DNA from: Obrimoposthia wandeli
Taxonomy: Eukaryota
NCBI GenBank assembly: GCA_977020255.1
Contig: CDROCS010000253.1
Location: 1,798,001 to 1,862,000 of the forward strand
Length of the DNA stretch: 64,000 nucleotides
Reading direction: 5' to 3'
Shown: positions 10,375 to 26,957 of the stretch, in pieces
How the letters are laid out: every line of letters starts with the position of its first letter
Numbering within the stretch: position 1 is the stretch's first letter
Notes under the pieces: model-generated
The model's database searches: none
Told to the model about the DNA's origin: nothing
What the model saw: only the letters and a program-made list of their open reading frames with translations
Translations under genes and position numbers: made by a program

Positions 10375-11259
10375 TTATTTAGAGAACACCACGGCTTTTT
10401 TACCGTGTAAGAAAATTCGATGTTCAATATGACAACGCACCGCACGCGACAGCGTTAAACATTCTATATCTCGGCCTTTCGCCGCTAAATCTTGTGGGTA
10501 ATAACTGTGATCAACCGTTTCAACCCCTTGGCTAATGATGGGCCCTTCATCAAGATCATCACTGACATAATGTGCGGTAGCGCCCACTAACTTGATGCCA
10601 CGGTCATAGGCTTGATAATACGGTCTAGCGCCCTTAAAACCAGGTAATAACGAATGGTGAATGTTAATGGCTTTACCGGACAGTTTTTTACACATCTCAC
10701 TCGAGAGCACTTGCATGTAACGTGCTAACACCACTAAGTCGGCTTCACAGTCTTGTATTATCTGCCAAACCTTGGCTTCTTGCGCGGGTTTCGTTGCCTT
10801 AGTGATAGGCAGATGGTAATAAGGAATGCCATGCCACTTGGCCAGCGCTTCTAAATCAGGATGATTAGAGATGATCGCCGGTATTTCTATATTCAGATCC
10901 CCCGTACGATAACGGTACAATAAGTCATTTAGACAATGATCGTGTTTTGACACCATGATCACGACTTTGGATTTATAAGGGCTCGAGGCCAGTTGCCACT
11001 GCATGTCAAATTCACTGGCGCGTTGTTCGAATTGTTGGCAAAAATCGTCTCGGTTAAAGGCGGTTGCCGTATCTGTATCGGCTCTAAACGCGATACGAAT
11101 GAAAAAACGCTGTTCGTCGGTATCATCAAACGAGTGGATTTCATTAATATAAAAGCCTTGCTCAAACAAAAAACGTGTCACTACATCCACCGTGCCTGGT
11201 TGGCTAGGGCAGCTTGCGGTGATGATATGGGTTTGTGGTGTTGGGGTGATATCAGACAT
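10375..11259 (-). CDS. purU: Formyltetrahydrofolate deformylase
   Basis: N-terminal ACT domain; MVSKHDHCL, VVLARYMQ, INIHHSLLPGFKGA, LDEGPII. Confidence 0.95.
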   Translation of the reverse strand: MSDITPTPQTHIITASCPSQPGTVDVVTRFLFEQGFYINEIHSFDDTDEQRFFIRIAFRADTDTATAFNRDDFCQQFEQRASEFDMQWQLASSPYKSKVVIMVSKHDHCLNDLLYRYRTGDLNIEIPAIISNHPDLEALAKWHGIPYYHLPITKATKPAQEAKVWQIIQDCEADLVVLARYMQVLSSEMCKKLSGKAINIHHSLLPGFKGARPYYQAYDRGIKLVGATAHYVSDDLDEGPIISQGVETVDHSYYPQDLAAKGRDIECLTLSRAVRCHIEHRIFLHGKKAVVFSK

Positions 11260-11437: not shown

Positions 11438-12034
11438 TTAGACAATAGTTAAGCCGTATTCTTGGCTGCCTTGTTGTATCCATAACCACACGTAGTCAGA
11501 AAAACTACGGCGAACCACTAAATGGAACGTATGCTCATCAATACGTAAAATGTGCGCACCTGTTTTGGCGAACGTCGTGCCAACCACTTTACCAACCGGA
11601 AAGCTGTCCAGATGAAAATCATAACCGGTCGATTTTTTCATCAGCTCAATAACATGGCTACCACTGATTTCGAGCAGGGTTTGCGCGCCACTGATATCAC
11701 TGACGGCAAAATGACCTGTTAACGTCGCGCGCAGTGTTTGCTCAACCGCATATTCGCTGCCTGACGCAACAACAATCAACCATTCATCAGGGGCTAACCA
11801 CATGATTTGAGCAAGGTCGCTCTTGGCACTACTACACGGTGTGATAGGCAATGCTACGCCAAGGGCTGCTTGCACGCCCGCCAAAAAGGCGGGGTCTTGC
11901 ACGTTGCCACGTAAGTTAAGGTGGCCTAATAAGGCCGCCTCATGCAAGACAATGCCACCTGAATTCGATTGACCGATTAAACGGTCAAGCTGCGCATGGT
12001 GCAGCGGGGATTCTACTTGTACTGAATTAGACAT
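11438..12034 (-). CDS. soxG: Sarcosine oxidase gamma subunit
   Basis: WLAPDEWL, DISGAQ, VRRSFSDY. Likely start ATG 12034 (MSNSVQ) overlapping the soxA stop, rather than 12103. Confidence 0.9.
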   Translation of the reverse strand: MSNSVQVESPLHHAQLDRLIGQSNSGGIVLHEAALLGHLNLRGNVQDPAFLAGVQAALGVALPITPCSSAKSDLAQIMWLAPDEWLIVVASGSEYAVEQTLRATLTGHFAVSDISGAQTLLEISGSHVIELMKKSTGYDFHLDSFPVGKVVGTTFAKTGAHILRIDEHTFHLVVRRSFSDYVWLWIQQGSQEYGLTIV

Positions 12035-15000
12035 TTTGACGGTCTCCCTTTGGATCATAAAATACTGGGCTGCAAATTTCAGCTTCAACCGTGGTGCCAT
12101 CACTTAATGGCAAAAACACACTCTGTCCCTTGCGGTTGATACCACCTTTAACGACAGCTAACGCAAAAGAGTAACCCATACATGCACTGTAATAGCTGGA
12201 GGTCACATGACCTACCATAGTCATGGGAATACTTTGACCTTTCTCAAAGACAATTTGCGCGCCTTCAGGTAAAACAAATTTAGGATCTTTAGGTTTCAAG
12301 CCGACCATTTGTTTGCGATCATCACGTTTATTGTCATGGCGCGTCCAAGAGCGTTTGCCGATAAAGCTAAAGTCTTTTTTCTTGCCCACGACCCAATCCA
12401 TGTCTAAATCTTGTGGCGTCACCGAGCCATCGGTGTCTTGTCCGACAATGATAAAGCCTTTTTCTGCGCGTAAAATATGCATGGTTTCGGTGCCATACGG
12501 GGTGATATTAAATTCTTCACCCGCCGCCATCACCGCTTTCCACGCATGCATGCCATAGTTGGCTTGCACGTTAATTTCAAACGACAGTTCGCCCGTAAAC
12601 GAGATACGGAAAATACGTGCCTTAACCCCTGCAACCGTCGCTGCGCGCCAATCCATGTACTTGAAGCTGTCATTACTGACATCAATATCACAGATTTTCT
12701 CTAATACTTTACGTGAATTAGGGCCTGAGATGGTCATGGTTGACCAATGATCGGTCACGGTTGAGAAATACACCTCTAGCTCTGGCCACTCAGTTTGATG
12801 CCATAGCTCTAACCATTGCAATACGCCCGCCGCGCCGCCTGTGGTGGTGGTCATGATAAAACGATTGTCATCAAGACAAACCGTAACACCATCATCAAAG
12901 ACCATACCGTCTTCTTTACACATCACCCCGTAGCGACATTTGCCAACACCTAATTTGCTCCATGGGTTGGTATAAACACGGTTTAAAAATTCTCGTGCAT
13001 CTTTACCTTGGATATCAATTTTACCTAAGGTGGAGGCATCTAAAATACCGACACTGTTACGCGTGGCCAAACACTCACGTTCAAGTGACTGTTGCATGGT
13101 TTCACCCGGCTGTGGGAAATACCAAGGACGTTTCCATTGACCCACATCTTCAAACTCAGCGCCATTATCAAGGTGCCATTTGTGCATAGCACTAAAACGG
13201 GCGGGATCAAATAAGTGCTTCACATCAGCACCCGCTAAGGCACCAAAGGTTGTTGGTGTGTACATAGGACGGAAGATAGTCGTGCCCGTTTCAGGAATGG
13301 TTTTACCTAACGATTTAGCCGTGATAGCCATACCGTTGATATTACCTAGCTTACCTTGATCGGTACCAAAACCTAACGCAGTGTAACGCTTCACATGCTC
13401 GATAGACTCAAAACCTTCACGGTTTGCCAGCTCAATACCGGCAGCGGTGACATCGTTTTGATAATCGACAAATTGCTTCGGTGCTCTGCTGGTTCTTTTA
13501 CTGTGGGGCACGTGGAATAATGCCATTGAGGCATCTTCTTTTGGATCGTTAGTTTTAGGTAAGGTACCGCTATAACGTCCTTCACCTTTACCAGCCGCTT
13601 TAGCCGCGATAGCGCCGGTCGTGAAACCATTGCTTATCACTTTTGATAAGGCGTAAACGCCTTCAAGGCCGCCACAACTGTGTTGGTTTTGCACCGTATC
13701 ACCGGGGACAAATCCAGCCACGTCTTCGTTCCAGACCGGACGAGAGCCGGTGTGTGATGACAAATGTATCACCGGGCTCCAACCGCCAGAGCTGGCAACG
13801 GTGTCACAAGTGAAATGTTTTGCCGTGCCGGTAACGGTATGATTAGCCGCATTGATGGGGGCAATATCAACCCCTTTCACACGTTTGCTGCCTTTGACTT
13901 CGATAACGCCATGACCAAAGATGACCGTAATGCCCAGTTGTTTAGCTTTCGTGACCAAGTCGCCAGTTGAATTGGCTCGCGTATCAACGATTGCGACGAC
14001 ATTGCGACCCGCTTGATGCCAATCAATTGCTGTTTTGTAGGCATTGTCATTGGTGGTCATTAACACCAATTGCTTGCCAGGGACCACATCATAACGATTA
14101 ATGTAAGTGGACACGGCATTGGCTAACATACAGCCAGGTACATCATTATTACCGTAAACAAGCGGACGCTCATGGGCACCGGTGGCTAAAATGACCTGTT
14201 TTGCACGCACTTTATGCACACGCTGACGCGTGCTTTGTAATTGATGCTCACCTAAATGGTCGGTGCGACGCTCGTTAATACCGACCAAATTATGATCGTA
14301 ATAACCAAAGACTGTGCTGCGTGGTAACAACATAACGTTGTCCATGTCGCTAAGCTGCGCCACGGTTTTTTCAACCCACTGACTCGCTGCTTGACCGTCT
14401 ATTTGCTGGGTAGAGCATAATAAACTGCCACCAAATTCATTTTGTTCATCACTAATGATCACACGTGCGCCGGTTTGTGCGGCGGATAATGCCGCTGCTA
14501 AACCAGCGGGTCCCGCGCCAACAATCATCACATCACAATGGTGGTGCATTTTGTCATAGCTGTCGGGATCGTTTTGCTGTGGGCTTGCCCCTAAGCCAGC
14601 GCCTTTGCGTATTAAATGCTCATAAGACATCCATAACGACTGTGGAAACATAAAGGTTTTATAATAAAACCCCGGTGGCATCATAGCGCCACCGAGCTTG
14701 CCAACCGTTGACATTAAATCAAAGTCAACATTGGGCCAGCCGTTGGTCGAGCTCGCGGTCAAGCCTTGATAAAGGTCAGTTTGCGTAGCGCGTGGGTTGG
14801 GAATAGTGGTGGCTTGTGTTGAGCCAATTTGAAAAATAGCATTGGGCTCTTGCGAGTCACTGGTAATAATACCGCGCGGACGCGAGTATTTAAAACTACG
14901 CCCGACCACATCAACACCGTTGGCCAGCAAGGCTGATGCGACGGTATCGCCTTCAAATCCTTGAAACTCTTTACCGTTAAAAGTAAAGGTTAAGGTGCGG

Positions 15001-15050
15001 TTGCGATTAATGCGTTTGCTGCTTGCAGCGATTCGATTAACTTGGCTCAT
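12027..15050 (-). CDS. soxA: Sarcosine oxidase alpha subunit
   Basis: GDTVASALLANG, VGRSFKYSRPRG, GAGPAG dinucleotide fold, KRYTALGFGTDQGK, C-terminal GcvT-like domain. Confidence 0.95.
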   Translation of the reverse strand: MSQVNRIAASSKRINRNRTLTFTFNGKEFQGFEGDTVASALLANGVDVVGRSFKYSRPRGIITSDSQEPNAIFQIGSTQATTIPNPRATQTDLYQGLTASSTNGWPNVDFDLMSTVGKLGGAMMPPGFYYKTFMFPQSLWMSYEHLIRKGAGLGASPQQNDPDSYDKMHHHCDVMIVGAGPAGLAAALSAAQTGARVIISDEQNEFGGSLLCSTQQIDGQAASQWVEKTVAQLSDMDNVMLLPRSTVFGYYDHNLVGINERRTDHLGEHQLQSTRQRVHKVRAKQVILATGAHERPLVYGNNDVPGCMLANAVSTYINRYDVVPGKQLVLMTTNDNAYKTAIDWHQAGRNVVAIVDTRANSTGDLVTKAKQLGITVIFGHGVIEVKGSKRVKGVDIAPINAANHTVTGTAKHFTCDTVASSGGWSPVIHLSSHTGSRPVWNEDVAGFVPGDTVQNQHSCGGLEGVYALSKVISNGFTTGAIAAKAAGKGEGRYSGTLPKTNDPKEDASMALFHVPHSKRTSRAPKQFVDYQNDVTAAGIELANREGFESIEHVKRYTALGFGTDQGKLGNINGMAITAKSLGKTIPETGTTIFRPMYTPTTFGALAGADVKHLFDPARFSAMHKWHLDNGAEFEDVGQWKRPWYFPQPGETMQQSLERECLATRNSVGILDASTLGKIDIQGKDAREFLNRVYTNPWSKLGVGKCRYGVMCKEDGMVFDDGVTVCLDDNRFIMTTTTGGAAGVLQWLELWHQTEWPELEVYFSTVTDHWSTMTISGPNSRKVLEKICDIDVSNDSFKYMDWRAATVAGVKARIFRISFTGELSFEINVQANYGMHAWKAVMAAGEEFNITPYGTETMHILRAEKGFIIVGQDTDGSVTPQDLDMDWVVGKKKDFSFIGKRSWTRHDNKRDDRKQMVGLKPKDPKFVLPEGAQIVFEKGQSIPMTMVGHVTSSYYSACMGYSFALAVVKGGINRKGQSVFLPLSDGTTVEAEICSPVFYDPKGDRQNV

Positions 15051-15346
15051 GATTGGCCCTCTTCACTAGCGGTGACGCTGGGTTGTTGACCCATTTTGTA
15101 AGTTTCCATGATTTCATAGGTCACGGTGTTTCGGGTCGCGTTAAAATACTTGCGACAACCGGCGGCGTGTAACCACATCTCGTGATGTAACCCGCGCGGG
15201 TTTTTACGGAAAAATAAGTAACGCGCCCATTGCTCATCACTAATTTCTTCGGGTTGTAGTGGGCGCACGATATGAGCTTGTCCAGCAGGACTAAACTCTT
15301 CTTCTTCGCGCAGCTCTTCACAATAAGGACAGTGGATAAGTAACAT
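15047..15346 (-). CDS. soxD: Sarcosine oxidase delta subunit
   Basis: CPYC...WLHAAGCRKYF zinc site; between soxB and soxA. Confidence 0.95.
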   Translation of the reverse strand: MLLIHCPYCEELREEEEFSPAGQAHIVRPLQPEEISDEQWARYLFFRKNPRGLHHEMWLHAAGCRKYFNATRNTVTYEIMETYKMGQQPSVTASEEGQS

Positions 15347-15358
15347 AATAAATTCCTC

Positions 15359-16609
15359 TTAGTGCGCAACACCGGCAGCGCCGTGTTCGTCAATTAATTC
15401 GCCTGATGAAAAGCGGTCGATGCTAAAGGGTTTGGCTAACGGGTGTGGCTCATCGTGAGCGATAGTATGGGCAAACACATGCCCAGCACCTGGTGTGGCT
15501 TTAAAACCACCGGTGCCCCAACCGCAGTTAAAATACAGTCCTTTGATGTGTGTTTTTGAAATAATAGGACACGCATCTGGGCAGGTATCAACCACGCCGC
15601 CCCAGGCGCGATTAAGGCGCACACGACTAAAAATGGGGAACATTTCGATAATGGCGGCAATGGTATGCTCAACCACATTAAATGAGCCACGCTGACCATA
15701 ACCGGTATAACCATCAATACCCGCACCGATGACCAAGTCACCTTTATCGGATTGACTGACGTAACCGTGTACATGGTTTGACATCACAACGGTATCTAAA
15801 ATAGGTTTTAACGGCTCAGACACCATCGCTTGTAACGGATGGGATTCGAGCGGTAATTCCATACCGACCATTTTGGCGATAACGGTTGAGTTACCAGCGG
15901 CGACACACGCGACTTTATTGGCGGAGATAAAACCACGGTTGGTTTCAACGCCTTCTACTGCGCCGTCTTTACGACGAATACCAGTGACTTCAGTTTGTTG
16001 TAATAAATCCACGCCTAAGGCTTCAGCAGCGCGGGCAAAACCCCACGCGACAGCGTCGTGACGAGCGGTGCCAGCACGGGCTTGCCATGATGCGCCCATG
16101 ACGGGGTAACGTGCACCGGTAGAGCAATCTAAAATAGGCACCATTTCTTGTACTTGTGCCGTGGTCAGTACTTCACCATCAATACCGTTAAGACGGTTCG
16201 CATTGACGCGGCGTTCAATATCACGCATATCTTGTAGTGAATGACCTAAGTTTAAAACACCGCGTTGACTAAACATCAAGTTGTAGTTTAGCTCTTGTGC
16301 CAAGCCTTCCCACAGTTTTAAGGAATGCTCATACAAGTGTGAGGCTTCATCCCATAAATAGTTTGAACGCACTATCGTGGTATTACGCGCGGTATTACCA
16401 CCGCCTAAATAGCCTTTCTCAACCACGGCAATATTAGTGATGCCGTGTTCTTTAGCTAAATAATAAGCGGTTGCCAGACCATGCCCACCGCCGCCTATGA
16501 TGACTACGTCATAATGTTTTTTTGGGATCGGATTACTCCAAACCCGTTGCCAGTTCTCGTGATAAGTTAACGAGTGCTTTAACAAGCCAAATCCTGAATA
16601 TTGTTGCAT
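15359..16609 (-). CDS. soxB: Sarcosine oxidase beta subunit
   Basis: [30 protein letters not shown]-terminus. Confidence 0.95.
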
Positions 16610-16694: not shown

Positions 16695-17948
16695 TTAACG
16701 ATACACTGGGTTTTTATCACACAAGCCCAATACTTTATTACGTACATCGGTAATGGTTTTTTCATTAGTAATGTCATCTAAGACATCACAAATCCAGTCG
16801 GTTAACTGAGCAACGTCCTCAAGACCAAAACCACGACTGGTGATAGCGGGAGTACCAATGCGTAGGCCACTGGTGACAAACGGCGATTGTGGGTCGTTCG
16901 GCACAGAGTTTTTGTTGACGGTAATATTGGCACGACCTAACGCGGCATCGGCGTCTTTACCGGTAATGCCTTTATCGATTAAATCAAGTAAAAACAGATG
17001 GTTATCTGTACCACCCGACACCACCTTATAACCACGTTGTTGGAATACTCGGGCCATTTCACGGGCGTTGTCGATAACTTGTTGCTGGTATTCAACAAAG
17101 CCTTCAGATAAGGCTTCTTTGAAACAAATCGCTTTGGCCGCGATAACATGCATTAACGGTCCACCTTGACCGGCAGGGAAAACGGCTGAGTTTAATTTCT
17201 TAGCCAGTTCGTCATTTTTCTTAGCGATAATCAAACCGCCACGTGGGCCACGTAATGTTTTATGGGTAGTGGTAGTCACCACATCAGCAATTGGTACCGG
17301 GTTAGGGTATAAGCCAGCAGCGACCAAACCCGCAACGTGCGCCATATCGACAAATAACCACGCGCCAATGCTATCAGCAATGTCACGAAAACGTTGCCAG
17401 TCAACCACACGAGAATAGGCGGAGAAACCAGCAATAATCATTTTCGGTTGGTGCTCTTGGGCCAAACGCTCTACTTGCTCGTAGTCAATCTCACCGGTTT
17501 CTTCATGTAGACCGTATTGTACCGCGTTATAAATCTTACCGGAGAAGCTTACTTTGGAGCCATGGGTTAAATGACCGCCATGGGCTAAGCTCATGCCGAG
17601 CACGGTTTCACCGGGCTTTAACAAGGCCATAAAGACAGCGGCATTGGCTTGAGAGCCAGAATGGGGTTGTACATTGGCGTAATCGGCACCGAATAATGTT
17701 TTGGCACGATCAATAGCGAGTTGCTCAATCACATCGACGTGTTCACAGCCGCCGTAATAACGCTTACCGGGATAACCTTCTGCATATTTGTTGGTCAGTT
17801 GAGTCCCTTGAGCTTGCATAACACGGGCACTGGCATAGTTTTCAGATGCTATCAACTCAACGTGATCTTGTTGACGCTTATCTTCTTGCTGAATTGCTTG
17901 CCAAATGCTGTCATCGAAGCCTGCTATTTGATCATTTTTATAAAACAT
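16695..17948 (-). CDS. glyA: Serine hydroxymethyltransferase
   Basis: [34 protein letters not shown] (PLP lysine). Confidence 0.97.
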
Positions 17949-17999
17949 TTTCTTTCTCCGCGGCTGAACATGCCATTTTGTATTTTAGGTTTATTTTAA

Positions 18000-18023
18000 T
18001 ACTCGCTTGAACACAAACGAGTA
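18000..18023. promoter_or_regulatory. Inverted repeat upstream of glyA (operator candidate)
   Basis: TACTCGCTTG-AACA-CAAACGAGTA, 1 mismatch. Confidence 0.35.
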
Positions 18024-18094
18024 ATTACTTCATTAATGCCACTACTACATTGAATTACGAATTCTATGTAGTAGTGACGTAATTAATTATGCTA

Positions 18095-19603
18095 CTAAGC
18101 TTTTCTGGCGGACATAGTCGCACCTTTCCTTACTTCCATAGTCTTATTTTCAGACATTTCCTCTTCTTCCTGTTTATATCGTGCTAATTCAGCAGCAGAC
18201 ATTTTTGGTGAAAAGAGTCCAAGTGCCGCATAGGTCAAGCCAATTAATGGCGATAACCAACAGGCAAATGCTAACGGAATATAAAGTAGATTTTCAATAT
18301 TCCCCTCAGCAATTCCTAAACCTAATGCGGTAATAACAAAAGCACCACCAGCATTCCATGGTATTAAAGGAGAGATCAAGGTGCCACCTTCTTCAACAGC
18401 ACGTGATAAGTTCAGTTTTGAGTAACCTTTATCAACATAAGCGGGTGCAAACATTCGACCCGGTAACGCAATAGAAAGGTAAGGGTCGCCAGCAACAAGA
18501 TTGGTTGCTATTGCAGCACCCGTAGCTGAAGCTTGTAAGCCAAAAAATGATTTAACACGGCTAAGTATTGCCGTAATAATAGTTTCTAAACATTTAGTAC
18601 GCTCAAGTACACCGCCAAAGCCTAACGCAATGACAACTAACGTAATAACCCAAGTCATTGATTGAACACCACCGCGATTTAGCAAGCCATCAATTTCAGA
18701 AACGCCAGTTTCTATCTTGTATCCTGATTGCATAAAATTAAATATTTCATGCACTGAAGCGCCCTGAACAAATATAGCGAGTAACGCACCAGCAAATACA
18801 CCAGCGAACAACGAAGGTAGAGCCGGCATTTTTTTAAGGGCAAGCGCAATGACTAGTAAGGGTGGTAATAATACGTAAAAAGAAAGGTTAAAATTGCTTT
18901 CTAGACCATTAGTAATAGCTTCTATTTTAGAGAAGTCGACTTCATTCGAACCAATTAGATTAAATCCGACAAATATATAGATGACCAAAGCAATAAGCAT
19001 TGCAGGTACTGTTGTTGGTAACATATTACGAATATGGTCGAATAAATTGACGCCCGTTACGGCAGGTGCCAAATTGGTAGTATCAGAGAGTGGTGATATT
19101 TTATCACCAAAGAAAGCGCCGGAAACTACAGCCCCTGCAGTCCAGTACATTGGGACATCAAACCCAGAACCAATACCCATCAAGGCAAGGCCTACGGTAC
19201 CTGTTGTACCCCAAGATGTTCCTAAAGATACAGATACTACGGCACATAACACCATGGCTGCAGCCAAAAATATTTCTGGATTCAATACTTTTAATCCGTA
19301 GTATATGAGCGCTGGTACAGTACCAGAAGCAATCCAGACGCCGACGATCATACCAACGGTCATTAGAATAGCAATTGATGGAAGCCCGACACGAATAACG
19401 TGCATCACTCCTTTTTCCATATCATCCCAGCGATAACCACGAAACCATCCCAAAGTGGCTGTAATCGCGATCCCAATAGCGAGAGGAATATGAGGCGTAA
19501 AGTCGCCGTAATAGAATAATTGAATGCCTAGAATTGTCAGTGTTAATATTATTGGCAGTACAGCCAGAAATAAACTGGGTTTTATTATATTATTTTCAGT
19601 CAT
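18095..19603 (-). CDS. NhaC-family transporter
   Basis: Polytopic membrane protein; GTSWGTTGT, SGAFFGDKISPLSDTTNLA, LIPWN. Confidence 0.88.
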   Translation of the reverse strand: MTENNIIKPSLFLAVLPIILTLTILGIQLFYYGDFTPHIPLAIGIAITATLGWFRGYRWDDMEKGVMHVIRVGLPSIAILMTVGMIVGVWIASGTVPALIYYGLKVLNPEIFLAAAMVLCAVVSVSLGTSWGTTGTVGLALMGIGSGFDVPMYWTAGAVVSGAFFGDKISPLSDTTNLAPAVTGVNLFDHIRNMLPTTVPAMLIALVIYIFVGFNLIGSNEVDFSKIEAITNGLESNFNLSFYVLLPPLLVIALALKKMPALPSLFAGVFAGALLAIFVQGASVHEIFNFMQSGYKIETGVSEIDGLLNRGGVQSMTWVITLVVIALGFGGVLERTKCLETIITAILSRVKSFFGLQASATGAAIATNLVAGDPYLSIALPGRMFAPAYVDKGYSKLNLSRAVEEGGTLISPLIPWNAGGAFVITALGLGIAEGNIENLLYIPLAFACWLSPLIGLTYAALGLFSPKMSAAELARYKQEEEEMSENKTMEVRKGATMSARKA

Positions 19604-19691
19604 TTTTTACTCCTGTTGAGTTATCAGGTAATGAGCGAGACTTTAAAATTATGTTCTCTCTTTCTCATTCCCTGAATTACATTAAAGGGTA

Positions 19692-19732
19692 GATGTAAAC
19701 TCAGAATAAATAACATGTAAAAAGATGTAAAC
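19692..19732. promoter_or_regulatory. 41-bp direct-repeat box upstream of the NhaC-family gene
   Basis: GATGTAAACTCAGAATAAATAACATGTAAAAGATGTAAACG; near-identical reverse-complement copy at 24112-24153. Confidence 0.75.
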
Positions 19733-19780
19733 GAGCGATTAAGTGGAAAAGGTATATAAAGAACATGCCGATTCAGGTCG

Positions 19781-20059
19781 GCATTTATACAGTCAATGAC
19801 AAATAGATAGGAGAAAGTCCTGGTATGATTCTTTTTGTCGAGGCAAGCATTGACCTACGTAATAAAGCAGTTTAGCTTTTGTAGGTTGTACGAGCGTAGC
19901 GAGGCTTGACAATTTACCTTGGAAGGATATGAGTACAACGATCACTATAGGACTTTCAGTCCGCAAAAGAACCTACCGTCTTTAAGCGGTATGTAGTTCA
20001 GTTAGGTTATTTTATTAATATCTAGCCGTTACTATTCAATGTGGAGCGGGTATAAATGC
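19781..20059. mobile_element. Second, more degenerate MITE-like element
   Basis: Bounded by 10-bp IR GCATTTATAC/GTATAAATGC. Right end GTGGAGCGGGTATA is identical to the end of 9891-10203; internal AGGCAAG(G)CATTGA motif also shared. Confidence 0.55.
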
Positions 20060-20118
20060 ATTTCTCTTGCTAACTGGTATAGGTTTTCGTTTACTTTGAA
20101 TCATTGACTTTGAATAAT

Positions 20119-22485
20119 TTAACTACAGTAGCTTGCGGCCTTAGCTAAACTTTTTTCCATAATGGGATCGAGCTGTAAAAGTAGCTGTGCAACATGCTTA
20201 ATAGCACCCTTTTTGGCATTAAGCTCTAATTGACGTAAAAGTTGACTGGCTTGAGCAAAGCCCAGCATATCGCAGGCACCCGCCAGTTCATGCGCTTGGT
20301 GTTCTACTTCATAATGGTCGTCACTCGCTAGGCTTTGCTGCAATGCAGGCCAAAGTTGCTGCTGTATTTTACAAAAGCTTTGCATTAGTTTTGCTAATTT
20401 AGCAGCACCTAAAATTTGTAGATGCGTTTCGATCATTACAGGATCTAGTAATGGCGTATCACGGGTGGTATTTATTTTGGGAATAATTGACGATGGCTTG
20501 GCTTGTTGTGGGTCTAATGCTCGCTCTATAGCCTCTAATAATAGTTGCTGCCTCACGGGTTTAGCCACAACATCTTGTAGTCCTGCATTGAAGTAATCTT
20601 GAATATCGTCGGGACGAACGCTCGCAGTCAAGGCTATTATTGGGGTTTTGTAGTTGCAATATTCAGGTTTTTTTCGGATCTGCTCACTAATCTCTAGGCC
20701 ACTTATACCCGGTAAATGCATGTCCATTAGAATAATATCGAAGCTCTCACGACTGGCAATATCGATAGCACTATGACCATTATCAGCTAATTTAACTTGG
20801 TGTTGTTCCAACAAACCTAGCACCACTTGCTGGTTAATCTCGACATCTTCAACCAGTAATATTTTCAGTATTGGTAGTATTGGTAGTATTGATTTGGCTT
20901 TATATTCACTCGCGTCAGCTACTTTTAGCTTCACTTCAACCCAAAAAGTACTGCCCTCACCAAGCGTACTCTCAACGCCAATTTGCCCTCCCATCTCCTG
21001 ACTCAGTTGACGACAGATAGAGAGTCCTAGCCCAGTTCCTCCAAAGCGACGGGTGATTGATTCATCTGCCTGAGCAAAACGTTCAAATATATGTTCTTGT
21101 AGTGCCGGTTTAATGCCAATTCCGCTATCTCGAATTGAAAAGCGTAGCCGATGTTGTTTGTCAATCGGGTCAAGTTGAATGACACGGAGCAATACTTCAC
21201 CATGATCGGTAAATTTAATTGCATTAGCCAACAAGTTGGTTAGGATCTGGCGTAAGCTACCTACAGCGTCGTGATATAAATCGCCAACAATGGAAACGTC
21301 TAACTTTAGTTGTAAATTTTTTTCATCCGCTTTAGGTTGCATCAAACTGATAAGACTTTGTAGTAACTCATCGAGAGAGAAAAAGGACTCGGAGCAAACG
21401 TAACCCCCTTCTTCTAGTTGAGCGTATTGCAGCACATGGTCAAAGGTTTCAAGCAATGCTTCTGTTGAATCGTGTAATATTTTCACTCGATGGCATTGTG
21501 ACTCGATTAATTCATTGTTTTGTAATAGTTGAATCATTCCTAGCATGCCATTCATTGGTGTACGAATTTCATGGCTCATGGTTGCTAAGAATTGTGATTT
21601 TGCTTTGTTTGCTTCTTCTGCGACTTCCTTCGCTTTCTGTAAACTCATGGTTCTGCGTTTAACCATCTGTTGGAGTTGATCGCGATTATAGCGCAGTGCC
21701 TGCTTCTCTTGTTCGCGCCGGTTTATATCATGACGAATTGCCATACGCATTTCATTTAGTGCATTGACTAATTGGTTTAGTTCGTCGGAAGTGCGAGGTT
21801 GGCGACGTCTTAATGTCAGTGGTGCTTCAAGTTCACCGTCACCTATTGCTTTACTGTAACTCGCCATACTTTCGAGATGTCGAGTAATTAGCCGTTGTAA
21901 AATGAACATAATTACTAGCATGATGAGCACTACTAGTAATGTCTGGTTTAATAAAATACTAAAACCAGTTGCCCATAACCTAGCATTTATAGCGGCCAGA
22001 TCAGTAGCGATAATAAGTGTTCCAAGTTGACGTTTATTGATTTGTTTGACGTTACTTTCAATGTTGCCATTACCATTACCTTTGTCAGGAATACTGAGTG
22101 AAAAACTCGTTTTCATTACGCTTTTGTTGCTATCAAAAACTTGGTCTGGCAAACGGATAAAAGTATTATGGGTATGATCTTTAAGTTCAAGGGTCGCTAT
22201 GTCTGGCAGCGCTTTGATACCTTTAAGTTGCAGTTCAAGCTGTGTCTGATCAAAATCCCACAGGCTACGGGCTAAGCTTGCTGTATAACTAGTACGGATT
22301 AACTGGATCCGCTGATCAATATTACGCATCTCTCGCTGATAATCTAAGGTGATTTGTAGCAAAGTTGACAGCATAATGAATACAAAACTGCATAGAGTGA
22401 TATAAACTATCATGCGATAACTTAATGGATGGTCTTTAGGGTAACGGATCAGACGACGCCAGCCAGCTATGTTAGGGAATTTCAA
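20119..22485 (-). CDS. Hybrid sensor histidine kinase (TM-periplasmic-TM-HAMP-HisKA-HATPase-REC-Hpt)
   Basis: [50 protein letters not shown]. Confidence 0.93.
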
Positions 22486-23279
22486 TGAATATCAGTCTCG
22501 TTTGATGACTCAAGATAAATTTTACTGTACTTGGTTAGTAACTGTTGGATTTTGCCGTTTTCATGCAACTGCTTTAAACGTTGATTAATATAGGGCAGGT
22601 GCTGACTAATTTCACTATGGGGGCTTAGTGCTATATAATAATACTCGGTTTTTAACTTGAATGGTGCAACTATTATTTTTTTACTGTAGCCAAACTTTTG
22701 AGTTTGTAATTTACCACTAATAATACCTAAAGGCATGAAGTCAATTCTGCCAAGAGCCAGTTTTTCTAAGTTTTGTTTCCCCTCAGAAACATACTCTATT
22801 TGGTTATTTTTTCCGATAAACTTATCTAAACTATCACCAAAACTATCACCAAATAGCAAACCTACCGTTTTTCCTTTTAAATCACTAAGTGAATGATAGA
22901 TTTTACTATTATTCGGGTTAACATAAATACCAATGGGATCGTCAACAATATGTTGTTGACTAAAGTCGAAATCAGATTCGCGACTGGCTATTCGGTAGGC
23001 AGCTACCACGATATCAGCATGTCCTGTTTTTACTTCCCACAAACAGCGTTTCCAATTACCGACTGTATCAAGCCTAACTTGGTAGCCTAGTTCGCCAAAT
23101 ATTAGTTTAACTACAGCCGGTGCAACACCGATTACTTGCTGATGCTGGACCCAAGAAACGGGGGGATAATAGGGGTGTCCACATGCTATAAGCTCTCTTG
23201 CCTGACTTTTGGGTGATTGGAGTGTCACCATCAAGCAAAGTATTATAAAAAAATAATGCGCTAACAAGGATGGTTTCAT
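22482..23279 (-). CDS. Periplasmic solute-binding protein (SBP_bac_3-like)
   Basis: Signal peptide; HPYYPP, WKRCL...[19 protein letters not shown]; 4-bp overlaps with both neighbours. Confidence 0.82.
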
Positions 23280-24019
23280 ACGACATCGACAAGTTTAGGC
23301 GTAAATAGATAACCGGCGCCATGTACGGTTAATATTAAACGTGGAGCTGAGGAATCATCACAAAGTTTGCGACGCAATCGACCAATTAATACATCAACGG
23401 TACGATCAGTGGGTACCCATTCACGATTACGGATTTGATCAAGGATCTGATCTCTGGTCATAATTTGTCCGACATGATCCATTAGACATTTTAGTAATTG
23501 AAATTCACCTTCTGTTAGTTGCACTGTTACTTGTTGTTCATCAATCAGTTGACGTCTAATAGGGTTTAATTTCCAGCGATCAAATGCCTTTAGAGTATAG
23601 TCGCCATTATCTGCTAATTTTACCTGTTGGCAAAGTTTGACACGGCGGATTAGATTCTTAGCCCGAGCAAGAATTTCACGAGGATTAAAAGGCTTGGTCA
23701 CGTATTCATCAGCACCGCATTCAAGTCCGATAAGACGGTCAACTTCGTCCTGACTGCCGGTAACTAATATAATGCCAATTTCGTTGTTAATACGTAATTC
23801 TCTCGTTAAGGTCAGACCATCTTTACCTGGCATTCTAATATCAAGTAAAATAAGATCTACTGTGCCAAGAGCTAATAGCTCTTCAGCCGCTTCAGCGGTC
23901 GCTGCACATAACACTTCGTAGCCTTCGTTTTCAAAATAACTGCTTAATACCTGACGAGTCATCTCGTCATCATCAACAATTAAAATCTTTGATTCAGTTA
24001 ACATTATTATTTGATCCAT
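23276..24019 (-). CDS. OmpR-family response regulator (TorR/ArcA-like)
   Basis: ILIVDDD, LILLDIRMPG, GADEYVTKPF, RTVDVLIGRLRRKL, TVHGAGY. Confidence 0.93.
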   Translation of the reverse strand: MDQIIMLTESKILIVDDDEMTRQVLSSYFENEGYEVLCAATAEAAEELLALGTVDLILLDIRMPGKDGLTLTRELRINNEIGIILVTGSQDEVDRLIGLECGADEYVTKPFNPREILARAKNLIRRVKLCQQVKLADNGDYTLKAFDRWKLNPIRRQLIDEQQVTVQLTEGEFQLLKCLMDHVGQIMTRDQILDQIRNREWVPTDRTVDVLIGRLRRKLCDDSSAPRLILTVHGAGYLFTPKLVDVV

Positions 24020-24111
24020 TATTATTATTATTCTTATTCGGCTTAAGTTTATCGAAATATTTCACCCCGTCAAGTAACGCCAAAATGGCTTTAAAATTCA
24101 CAGTGATGGTT

Positions 24112-24153
24112 CGTTTACATCTTTTTACAAGTTATTTATCGTGGGTTTACATC
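24112..24153. promoter_or_regulatory. 42-bp direct-repeat box between the RR and porin genes
   Basis: CGTTTACATCTTTTTACAAGTTATTTATCGTGGGTTTACATC; TTTA(C/T) units at 24114, 24124, 24135, 24146. Confidence 0.75.
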
Positions 24154-24299
24154 AAAACGGTAGTGTTTTCCTGCGGGTGGATAAACCATCAAGCGTTGGC
24201 AGAACAATTTGACGGTCATTTACTCTTAATTACCGGCCTCGTTGCTTATAGCCTTCTCTAATAATTAAAATAACTTAACAATAAGTACAAGGAAATAGC

Positions 24300-25382
24300 A
24301 TGAAATATCCAAAATTAAAGTCGGTATTACTTCCTTTAGCCATAGCATTACCTGTTTTTGCCACTCAAGCGGCTGATGATTTAACTAAAGCTGAATTAGA
24401 AAGTCAGTTCAATGAAATTAAAATACGATTAGCGCAGTTGGAACAAAGCACAGTAACAACTGCACCACAAGAATCGAATACTGATATGAGCTTTTATGGC
24501 ACTTTACGACCTACTTTTGGTGTAACTAGCACTGATGATAGAGATGATTGGGATGTTGGTGATGCGCTTTCTCGTATCGGCTTTGCGGCGGAACATAAAT
24601 TAAGTAATGGCATGGTTGGCTTTGCTAAAGGTGAATTTAAAATCCAAATACAAGGCGATGCTCACTTTGGTGACGCCCGCAAAGCTTATGTCGGCATAAA
24701 AGGTGATTTTGGGCGAATAGCTATAGGTAAACAGGAAACAACTCAGTACGCGCTTGTCGGTACACCTGTTGATATCTTTAATCGAGGTGTTAACAGCCCT
24801 TTAGGTTATGATGATGTTAGTGTGTTCCGTCAGCAAGAGATGGTCTCGTATAGAAAGTCTTTTGGAAACTTTGAAATACGAGGTGAAGCTCAGTTTAAAG
24901 GTGAAGACAAAGTAAACGAAGGTAGTGATCTCGTCAATGCTGGTGTTAATTATATGGGCGATGACTATAGTGTAGCCGTAGCCTACTTGACTCGAAACTT
25001 TGCTGGTTCAGATCAAAATACCTTAGGTGTGTCGGCAAGTAAAAGCATTGGCGATTGGTATTTTGGCGCTGCTTATCTAGATATTGAACACGATGTTGTT
25101 GGTGGCGATATTACGACAATAGATGTCGTAGCGACCTATGCAATCAATAGCGAATATAAGCTATTGTTTGGTGTATCACAGCTTGATGATGAGCAAGCTG
25201 AAGTTAATTCAAAAGATGTTGCACGCTTTAATACCACACTTGAATGGCAAGGCAGCAAAGATTTCCGCTTATTTATTGAATATCAACATAACGAATTTGA
25301 CAATGATGACGTTAATTTAGCCGTTAACGATAGCGATCAATTAACAGTCGGTATGCGTTATAACTTTAATTATAACTTTTAA
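24300..25382 (+). CDS. Gram-negative porin with N-terminal coiled-coil extension
   Basis: Signal peptide; SFYGTLR, SRIGF, RKAYVGIKGDFGRIAIGKQ; ends VGMRYNFNYNF. Confidence 0.85.
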   Translation: MKYPKLKSVLLPLAIALPVFATQAADDLTKAELESQFNEIKIRLAQLEQSTVTTAPQESNTDMSFYGTLRPTFGVTSTDDRDDWDVGDALSRIGFAAEHKLSNGMVGFAKGEFKIQIQGDAHFGDARKAYVGIKGDFGRIAIGKQETTQYALVGTPVDIFNRGVNSPLGYDDVSVFRQQEMVSYRKSFGNFEIRGEAQFKGEDKVNEGSDLVNAGVNYMGDDYSVAVAYLTRNFAGSDQNTLGVSASKSIGDWYFGAAYLDIEHDVVGGDITTIDVVATYAINSEYKLLFGVSQLDDEQAEVNSKDVARFNTTLEWQGSKDFRLFIEYQHNEFDNDDVNLAVNDSDQLTVGMRYNFNYNF

Positions 25383-26327: not shown

Positions 26328-26957
26328 ATGCGTGGAGAAAATAATATTGATATTTCCCCGTCAATGGTCGTGACAGATGATAAAGAAAATGCTCATATTG
26401 TAGAAAAAATCACTATTGGTGTACAGCTTAAAGCTATCCGAACAAGTAACAAGTTGACCCTTGAAGAAGCCAGTAAACTGACAGGATTAGCGCGTTCAAC
26501 TTTATCAAAAATAGAAAATAAGCAGATATCTCCAACCTTCACCGTTATGAAAAAACTGGCCTCAGGCCTTAATATTGAACTGCCACAATTGTTTACCAAA
26601 CCAAAGGTGCTACAGGCTACCGGGCGCCGTGATTTAACCTTGTGTGACACAGGGAAATCCCATGTAACTTCTACTTATGAGCATGAACTCTTAGCTACAC
26701 AGTTTAGCAACAAAAAAATGATACCGTATAAAAGTCGTGTTTACGCAAGATGTTTTGATGATTTTGGAGAGTGGATACGACACGAAGGTGAAGAATTCTT
26801 ATTGGTATTGGAAGGGGAGATTCAATTCCTTACCGAATTTTATGAAGCGACAACATTAACCAAAGGTGACAACGTATATTATGACGCAAGCATGGGACAT
26901 TTAGTCATTTCAGTCAGTGAAGAAGATGCCTTGGTCTTGTGGGTAAGTACAGAATAA
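26328..26957 (+). CDS. XRE-family HTH-cupin transcriptional regulator
   Basis: LTLEEASKLTGLARSTLSKIENKQISPT; RHEGEEFLLVLEG...SMGH cupin. Confidence 0.9.
   Translation: MRGENNIDISPSMVVTDDKENAHIVEKITIGVQLKAIRTSNKLTLEEASKLTGLARSTLSKIENKQISPTFTVMKKLASGLNIELPQLFTKPKVLQATGRRDLTLCDTGKSHVTSTYEHELLATQFSNKKMIPYKSRVYARCFDDFGEWIRHEGEEFLLVLEGEIQFLTEFYEATTLTKGDNVYYDASMGHLVISVSEEDALVLWVSTE

Follow-up and report, generated by a model that had tools for sequence, protein, structure and literature searches.

The window, a 64,000-nucleotide stretch of contig CDROCS010000253.1 (positions 1,798,001 to 1,862,000; assembly GCA_977020255.1, filed under Obrimoposthia wandeli), has a three-gene operon encoding an OmpR/PhoB-family response regulator (RR), a periplasmic family-3 solute-binding protein (SBP) and a hybrid sensor histidine kinase. 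The operon lies between two copies of a four-repeat DNA box, one upstream of a gene for an NhaC-family membrane transporter (nhaC below) and the other upstream of a gene for an outer-membrane porin. These genes probably form a binding-protein-dependent phosphorelay which governs whether a small methylated amino acid (most likely sarcosine) enters the cell. On the simplest reading, an envelope sensor detects external sarcosine and opens an entry route made up of the porin and an inner-membrane carrier. This reading stands on the anatomy of the locus, on a box that is conserved and exclusive to it, and on its genomic link to sarcosine and one-carbon (C1) genes. The system is an unstudied addition to the known class of binding-protein-dependent two-component systems, and its proposed regulon of two promoters is unusually clear-cut.

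In the proposed mechanism, the secreted SBP would capture its ligand in the periplasm and dock on the CHASE5 domain of the kinase. Phosphate would then be relayed from His to Asp to the His of the Hpt domain and on to the Asp of the OmpR/TorR-type regulator. The phosphorylated RR would bind the four TTTACA repeats as two tandem dimers, occupying the -35 position, and would activate two promoters, that of nhaC and that of the porin and a stand-alone serine-dehydratase beta-domain protein (SDH_beta). The nhaC promoter would probably read on into glyA-soxBDAG-purU in Colwellia-type genomes. The sensor operon itself, with a separate consensus-like promoter and a terminator, would be expressed at a basal level. 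There is good reason to expect that the RR binds the box, and docking of the SBP on the kinase is likely. Sarcosine as the ligand is suggested by the gene context and is plausible, at slightly less than even chances.

The boxes and their promoters

Boxes 1 and 2 are each 42 bp long and are identical at 38 of 42 positions. Read towards its downstream gene, each has the hexamers TTTACA, TTTACA, TTTAT(T/C) and TTTACA, with starts 10, 11 and 11 nt apart. Box 1 faces nhaC (start 19603, minus strand) and box 2 faces the porin gene (start 24300, plus strand). A preliminary description of this DNA had reported two nearly identical boxes in the same orientation relative to these genes, and both points are confirmed. 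It had also given box 1 as 41 bp with spacings of 11/11/9. The short end coordinate and the odd spacing arose because one A was omitted from its box 1 sequence; box 1 is 42 bp (19692-19733) and has the 10/11/11 spacing that was correctly given for box 2. A degenerate 42-mer made from both boxes matches the window only at 19692-19733 on the minus strand and 24112-24153 on the plus strand, and has no match in 100 shuffled sequences. A search for four TTTACA hexamers at 10/11/11 spacing with at least 19 of 24 matching positions results in the same two window sites, both scoring 22/24, against a mean of 0.07 sites in 200 dinucleotide shuffles. The two boxes are far beyond chance.

Orthologous loci were gathered with the SBP as query, and the conserved sites were aligned (9 sites from 6 genomes). 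The relatives are four named genomes (L021-L024), L044 with 58% SBP identity, and a GC-rich group with approximately 40% SBP identity (L045-L048 and L050). The box upstream of nhaC is kept in the five closer genomes (L021-L024 and L044). The porin box is kept in L024 and in contig C4138, where it is again followed by a porin gene. The porin is absent from L023, in which the box is directly upstream of the SDH_beta gene, and it is lost from L022, in which a decayed relic of the porin box remains. L021, L022, L044 and the distant loci have a single box.

Mean pairwise identity across the nine sites is 0.32 in the 40 nt upstream of the box and 0.83 in the 38-nt repeat block. It is 0.51 in the 9-nt spacer that follows and 0.94 in a TA(G/A)TGT hexamer, which is located exactly 9 nt after the fourth repeat at 9/9 sites. 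The same contrast is seen when nhaC promoters are compared with the non-homologous porin or SDH_beta promoters. Since the box is conserved across unrelated promoters, these share a motif rather than copies of one DNA segment. Four distant GC-rich loci have a degenerate box before nhaC (TTTACA, TTTACA, GCACAA, CATACA, 9 nt, TAGCCT), and in three 20-kb loci the distant box is the sole weight-matrix match. In the distant locus L045 the site, which was found by eye, has five repeats and the hexamer TAGTCT.

The TA(G/A)TGT hexamer is probably the -10 element. It retains T1, A2 and T6 of the -10 consensus and its distance to the nhaC start is 74-76 nt in five genomes. A -35 element is absent ahead of it, and the proximal repeat ends 9 bp before it. 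In PhoB-type activator-dependent promoters, the -35 element is replaced by tandem direct repeats, the last of which ends approximately 10 bp upstream of the -10 hexamer. The box promoters appear to be laid out as in this type, and a winged-helix regulator could occupy their four repeats as two tandem dimers. The pho box differs in its repeat sequence and in having two repeats rather than four, and a contact of the bound regulator with sigma-70 is presumed here by analogy. One metatranscriptome contig, at 97% identity, spans the 5' half of nhaC and ends approximately 40 nt upstream of the start codon; this end is compatible with the predicted transcription start but proves nothing.

Two other promoter assignments were rejected. 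A promoter scan proposed one inside the box, made of repeat 1 and TATTCT or TATCGT as the -10 hexamer, but the relatives have CATTCT, AATCCT and AATCGC. The fourth repeat was also considered as a -35 element, but it has no -10-like hexamer 16-18 bp downstream. No Rfam match at E<=1 was found within 17900-24400 that would indicate an RNA element in the leaders.

The TTGACG-16-TAAACT promoter element of the sensor operon is kept upstream of RR in L021, L022 and L024, including L021, which has no porin box. With a promoter of its own, and a hairpin terminator between it and box 1, the operon is probably expressed at a basal level, whatever the state of its targets.

The box is confined to this locus. 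A genome-wide scan for it had been proposed in the preliminary description, and pattern scans were run on the bacterial chromosome that contains the window (C253). Only the two boxes are matched, whether by a pattern of 35 positions (at most 2 mismatches allowed) or by one of 29 (at most 3); weaker extra sites may exist beyond these patterns. The exact 53-position pattern of four repeats and hexamer was searched against 241 million metagenome records and gives 29 matches on 19 contigs, onto which the window proteins were mapped to place each match. Nearly all of them (28/29) are at the same locus, with 15 before nhaC, 8 before the porin gene, 2 before the SDH_beta gene and 3 beside RR at a contig end. 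Since the box is confined to one locus, it is unlikely to be the site of a global regulator. The comparative footprint (0.83 against 0.32), this exclusivity and the gene order support the earlier proposal that the box defines a transporter-plus-porin regulon. Elsewhere on the chromosome, a partial match at C253:4372136-4372158 consists of one repeat, 8 nt and TAGTGTT, with 1 mismatch.

The sensor proteins

The RR-SBP-kinase gene order and its translational coupling are kept in more than 10 genomes and approximately 19 metagenome contigs. The sensor genes adjoin nhaC in all relatives except L048 and the contigs that end before the gene. ATGA overlaps of 4 bp had been described for both junctions. 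This is correct for RR/SBP, whereas SBP and kinase overlap by TTGA, also 4 bp, with a TTG start in the window genome; the kinase gene of the relative L021 has an ATG start. L048 (G079:C3, 8434-12636) has a SouR-like gene followed by SBP and kinase genes, with no RR and no nhaC within 10 kb, and appears from this gene content to be a decayed or rewired version of the system.

The RR belongs to the OmpR/PhoB family, with an intact acceptor motif (DLILLDIRMPG) and the KPF motif. Its closest named NCBIfam models are TorR and then ArcA, both of which score below cut-off. The kinase has a first transmembrane segment (TM1), a periplasmic CHASE5 domain of approximately 120 aa, a second transmembrane segment (TM2), and HAMP, HisKA, HATPase, REC and Hpt domains. 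The H-box SHEIRTP, the receiver Asp motif and the Hpt motif HELAGA are present, as in hybrid (unorthodox) kinases. The Pfam CHASE5 match is at residues 48-108. The AlphaFold2 (AF2) model of the sensor domain, which is of low confidence (pLDDT 67), has one long helix and four strands, with weak structural matches to PAS/Cache-like domains (LapD, WalK, CitA, HptS) and none to TorS. The domain is predicted to be an alpha/beta CHASE5 domain of the PAS/Cache-like kind.

The SBP has a signal peptide and SBP_bac_3 (PF00497) as its only Pfam match. It has the invariant motifs ACGHP..PP.SW, GNW.RC and GDSFGD and two invariant cysteines. Foldseek matches of its AF2 model (pLDDT 87) are class-II amino-acid binders, with TM-scores of 0.7-0.8 and 15-23% identity. 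In HisJ-type family-3 amino-acid binders, an Arg holds the carboxylate and an Asp anchors the alpha-ammonium or alpha-amino group. A HMMER alignment with PDB 4oen, at approximately 20% identity, suggests that the Arg position is kept (invariant R100) and that the Asp position aligns with Leu or Gly. No ATP-binding cassette (ABC) permease or ATPase gene is linked to the SBP gene in the window map or at the orthologous loci. The gene is found with kinase and RR genes and not with transporter genes of the ABC type, which is the operon pattern of three-component kinases. At 37-40% identity there are SBP relatives whose genes stand by themselves, with no kinase gene; the neighbours of the stand-alone genes of L049 and L051 are unrelated and give no clue to a ligand.

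Target genes and gene map

The transporter belongs to the NhaC family (TC 2.A.35), with scores of 220 bits for PF03553 and 455 bits for TIGR00931 (cut-off 370). It also scores 400 bits against the model of the arginine/ornithine antiporter ArcD. It is proposed to be the importer of the sensed compound.

The glyA-soxBDAG-purU genes cover the conversion of sarcosine to glycine and then serine, plus C1 handling. They are on the same strand as nhaC and downstream of it in Colwellia-type loci, and they adjoin the sensor system in both arrangements, either head-to-tail with nhaC or as a separate divergent operon. No terminator or consensus promoter was found in the 146-bp gap between nhaC and glyA, and transcription of the sox genes together with nhaC would seem marginally the better guess. 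In L044, nhaC is followed by fdhA, which encodes a glutathione-independent formaldehyde dehydrogenase (784 bits, cut-off 637). The system had been proposed to be tied to methylated amino-acid catabolism, and this is supported by the sarcosine oxidase genes or the formaldehyde dehydrogenase gene that adjoin it. In the distant loci, the separate divergent sox operon is preceded by an AraC-GATase1 regulator gene of the SouR/GbdR type and has no box. Neither the window nor the 10-kb flanks of the loci in L021, L023, L024 and L044 have a SouR/GbdR-type gene. L022 has only a 34%-identical AraC-type gene approximately 8 kb away.

The porin has two paralogues elsewhere on the chromosome (66% and 60% identity), which have no box by the pattern scans. 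No terminator was found between the porin and SDH_beta genes, and the two are probably co-transcribed. SDH_beta is conserved at full length in L023 and L024. It has only the beta (ACT-like) domain of L-serine dehydratase, with no adjoining remnant of the alpha domain, and the sole full sdaA gene on the chromosome is far off at C253:4310021. The sarcosine pathway proceeds via GlyA and serine dehydratase to pyruvate (PMC12093977), and SDH_beta may be a regulatory or accessory protein of this route. In L021 (6346-9094), a Colwellia metagenome-assembled genome, the porin gene beside RR is replaced by Rieske oxygenase and reductase genes that resemble GbcA/GbcB of glycine betaine demethylation and have no box.

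The window comes from a bacterial chromosome that is at least 4.5 Mb long and whose host is a Colwellia-type marine bacterium; Colwellia and Psychromonas are the names carried by related loci. The chromosome sits within a 1.35-Gb assembly that also contains contigs from other bacteria. Contig C4138 (1179-4048) has a second Colwellia-like copy of the locus, with the box, an SBP that is 83% identical and a porin that is 78% identical. Three more SBP relatives, at approximately 50% identity, are on other bacterial contigs (C6832, C2735 and C6885). Since several contigs bear an SBP of this type, several related bacteria are present in the sample. The features of the window are listed in Table 1; domains were called with Pfam and NCBIfam models on the window proteins. 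The 335-bp spacer between the kinase stop codon and box 1 was considered as a component of the system and rejected, as it is a dispersed intergenic repeat. The 329-bp repeat (19790-20118) recurs, whole or in part, at least 8 more times on the chromosome, in some places as tandem units of approximately 95 bp, and is also copied on other bacterial contigs. The corresponding gap is approximately 20 bp in L021 and less than 200 bp in L022.

Table 1. Features of the sensor locus and its neighbourhood, in window coordinates.
Feature	Position	Strand	Basis or remark
purU	10375-11259	minus	NCBIfam, Pfam
soxG, soxA, soxD, soxB	11438-16609	minus	NCBIfam, Pfam
glyA	16695-17948	minus	NCBIfam, Pfam
NhaC-family membrane transporter gene, first behind box 1	18095-19603	minus	PF03553, TIGR00931
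Probable -10 hexamer TAATGT	19679-19684	minus	Conserved position and sequence; 75 nt before nhaC start codon
Box 1, upstream of NhaC-family gene	19692-19733	minus	Four TTTACA-like direct repeats; candidate RR site
Intrinsic-terminator-like hairpin, end of sensor operon	19765-19784	minus	31 bp before box 1
Dispersed repeat, 329 bp, kinase stop to terminator	19790-20118		Copies elsewhere on chromosome
Hybrid sensor histidine kinase	20119-22485	minus	Pfam; TTG start
Periplasmic family-3 SBP, proposed co-sensor	22482-23279	minus	PF00497, Sec signal peptide
OmpR/PhoB-family RR	23276-24019	minus	REC (PF00072) and winged-helix Trans_reg_C (PF00486)
Sigma-70-type promoter of RR-SBP-kinase operon, TTGACG-16-TAAACT	24046-24073	minus	Sequence; kept in relatives
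Box 2, upstream of porin gene, back to back with RR promoter	24112-24153	plus	Four-repeat box
Probable -10 hexamer TAGTGT	24161-24166	plus	9 nt after fourth repeat; conservation
Outer-membrane porin (Porin_4), first gene behind box 2	24300-25382	plus	PF13609
Stand-alone SDH_beta protein, 209 aa	25527-26156	plus	PF03315
HTH_3 and cupin regulator (PuuR-like, XRE family), after porin and SDH_beta genes	26328-26957	plus	Pfam

Other explanations and known systems

Several points weigh against a sarcosine-sensing phosphorelay that acts through the box. The NCBIfam equivalog model labels the transporter a Na+/H+ antiporter. The SBP appears to lack the Asp that anchors the alpha-amino group in classical family-3 binders, as read from a low-identity alignment, and conservation is the sole basis of the -10 assignment. 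One metagenome box (L066, 308-360) has no sensor genes within approximately 700 bp; it is a porin-type box on a 1,083-nt contig and is followed by a 49-aa open reading frame with a membrane-like N-terminus. A conserved 22-bp palindrome (18001-18022; ACTAG..TGA..TCA..CTAGT in relatives) is located 35-55 nt before the glyA start; in the window copy the two arms are altered symmetrically. The palindrome may form an RNA hairpin or serve as operator for a second regulator, for which the nearby HTH-cupin regulator gene is a candidate. Given the palindrome and this gene, sox could have its own control. The box repeat itself reads TGTAAA on the other strand, with 10-11 bp spacing, which is one base from TGTTAA, the direct-repeat half-site of ArcA. 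The box might then be bound by ArcA, a global paralogue of the RR, which would shut down an O2-dependent pathway, or by the HTH-cupin protein, whose gene is 2 kb away. ArcA is the second-best NCBIfam match of the RR, sarcosine oxidase requires O2, and strict patterns would miss weaker ArcA-like sites. However, a global regulator should have many sites, and the full pattern occurs twice on the chromosome and essentially at this locus in the metagenomes. Four phased direct repeats also fit a tandem winged-helix regulator and not a dimeric HTH-cupin protein, and in three different gene arrangements the box accompanies the sensor genes. Control by another regulator is therefore quite unlikely.

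The kinase may instead sense its ligand directly through CHASE5, with another role for the SBP, such as feeding a transporter encoded elsewhere. This is unlikely: the SBP gene is between RR and kinase with overlapping stop and start codons at every orthologous locus, no permease or ATPase gene is present, and the RR-SBP-kinase layout is the pattern of known SBP-dependent kinases (PMC8050422), although CHASE5/PAS-like domains can bind small molecules directly and the SBP relatives at 37-40% identity do without a kinase gene. The boxes are also an inverted pair that flanks the 4.4-kb RR-SBP-kinase block, as they would be if the three sensor genes were a mobile cassette and the boxes its terminal inverted repeats or the scars of a duplication. 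Such an origin is extremely unlikely, since there is no transposase gene, many genomes have a single box, similarity ends at the box and -10 hexamer, and the boxes have an internal periodicity of 10-11 bp and a fixed distance to the downstream start codons. It is a real, if somewhat doubtful, possibility that the system works as proposed but responds to dimethylglycine, glycine betaine, creatine, glycine, serine or another methylated amine. The SBP pocket is unreadable from sequence, as its PDB relatives are 15-23% identical, the GbcAB-like oxygenase genes are beside RR in L021, and any amine pathway that releases C1 units could account for the SDH_beta gene and fdhA. On the other hand, the sarcosine oxidase set is the only catabolic gene set that is consistently linked. 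In the distant relatives the sensor would control the transporter only, with a SouR-type regulator at sox, which is the layout expected if sarcosine itself is imported. A phosphorelay that responds to sarcosine and opens its entry route is the reading retained in what follows.

As osmolytes, glycine betaine, dimethylglycine and sarcosine are abundant in the sea, and they are a real source of carbon and nitrogen. The locus offers a candidate sarcosine importer and porin together with the signal path that would switch them on. It also offers a clean cis-element of four repeats and a fixed -10 hexamer at two sites per genome, and if the reading is correct it could be put to use as a compact switch that responds to sarcosine. 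Among cultured strains, Colwellia psychrerythraea 34H is a probable carrier. Near the compatible-solute genes of this strain, Collins and Deming noted the genes CPS_2472, for a porin, and CPS_2476, for an NhaC antiporter, with substrates given as unknown (PMC3691474), and this region is probably the same locus. They propose XRE and GGDEF regulators for sox, with XRE regulators after both 34H sox operons, and two-component terms are absent from their paper (PMC3691474). In the literature searched, no further paper names the CPS_2472/CPS_2476 genes, and none was found that links sarcosine to a two-component system or gives CHASE5 clues to this one. The system had been called undescribed, and this holds for the same literature.

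The system had also been described as TorRTS-like. The likeness to TorT/TorS/TorR is in the three-component layout: genes for a periplasmic binding protein, an OmpR-family regulator and a hybrid kinase with the domains HAMP-HisKA-HATPase-REC-Hpt stand together. At torC, too, the site of TorR consists of four phased direct repeats. TorS and TorR are the named models with the highest scores for the two proteins. The kinase scores 429 bits with the TorS model TIGR02956 (cut-off 676.5), over its cytoplasmic part only, and the RR scores 241.7 with the TorR model NF008034 (cut-off 275). The window SBP is SBP_bac_3, whereas TorT is Peripla_BP_1, and the window repeat, TTTACA, differs from the tor box. 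In place of a torCAD-type trimethylamine N-oxide (TMAO) reductase operon, a transporter and a porin are the targets. The sensor domain of the window kinase is a CHASE5 domain of approximately 120 aa with an alpha/beta fold predicted from a low-confidence model, in contrast to the bi-modular (double) four-helix bundle of TorS (PMC8050422). The system is Tor-like only in its cytoplasmic phosphorelay, which is an analogy and not membership.

SouR is the sarcosine-responsive sox activator of Pseudomonas (PMC12093977). SouR and GbdR control the same pathway genes as are found here, namely glyA, soxBDAG, purU, fdhA and sda (PMC12093977), but they are cytoplasmic one-component AraC-GATase1 sensors of an unrelated family. 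A 2025 vibrio study identified BCCT carriers for glycine betaine and dimethylglycine and none for sarcosine (PMC12093977). It is put forward tentatively, as a rather less than even proposition, that a family-3 SBP and a CHASE5 kinase form a sarcosine sensor, that marine gammaproteobacteria import sarcosine through the NhaC-family protein, and that the sensor replaced SouR as the switch of the sox operon in the Colwellia/Psychromonas lineage. If this is true, two lineages control the same catabolic operon differently, one by an envelope sensor and the other by a cytoplasmic AraC regulator.

A 2021 review of SBP-dependent signalling describes nine sensor kinases with SBP partners, none of which is of family 3 (PMC8050422). 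The only two SBP_bac_3-receptor pairs listed are ScrB/ScrC and GlnH with GlnX/PknG (PMC8050422). The pairing of a family-3 SBP with CHASE5 is absent from this catalogue, and if the reading is correct a new SBP family and sensor-domain pairing joins a short list of SBP-dependent kinases. In ScrB/ScrC of Vibrio parahaemolyticus, an SBP_bac_3 protein is likewise in an operon with a membrane receptor, but this partner is a GGDEF-EAL enzyme with cyclic di-GMP as its output, and there is no histidine kinase. Parallels in output are GltB/GtrS/GltR of Pseudomonas aeruginosa and HptA/HptS/HptR of Staphylococcus aureus. Their binding proteins are SBP_bac_1 and SBP_bac_11, their ligands are sugars or sugar phosphates and their kinases are non-hybrid. 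GltB also serves an ABC transporter, whereas the window SBP has no linked ABC genes. The sensor domain of HptS is among the weak structural matches of the window kinase. In both systems an SBP-stimulated kinase controls the uptake route of the sensed nutrient, as proposed here: the target of GtrS is gltBFGK-oprB, which encodes a transporter and a porin, and that of HptS is uhpT (PMC8050422).

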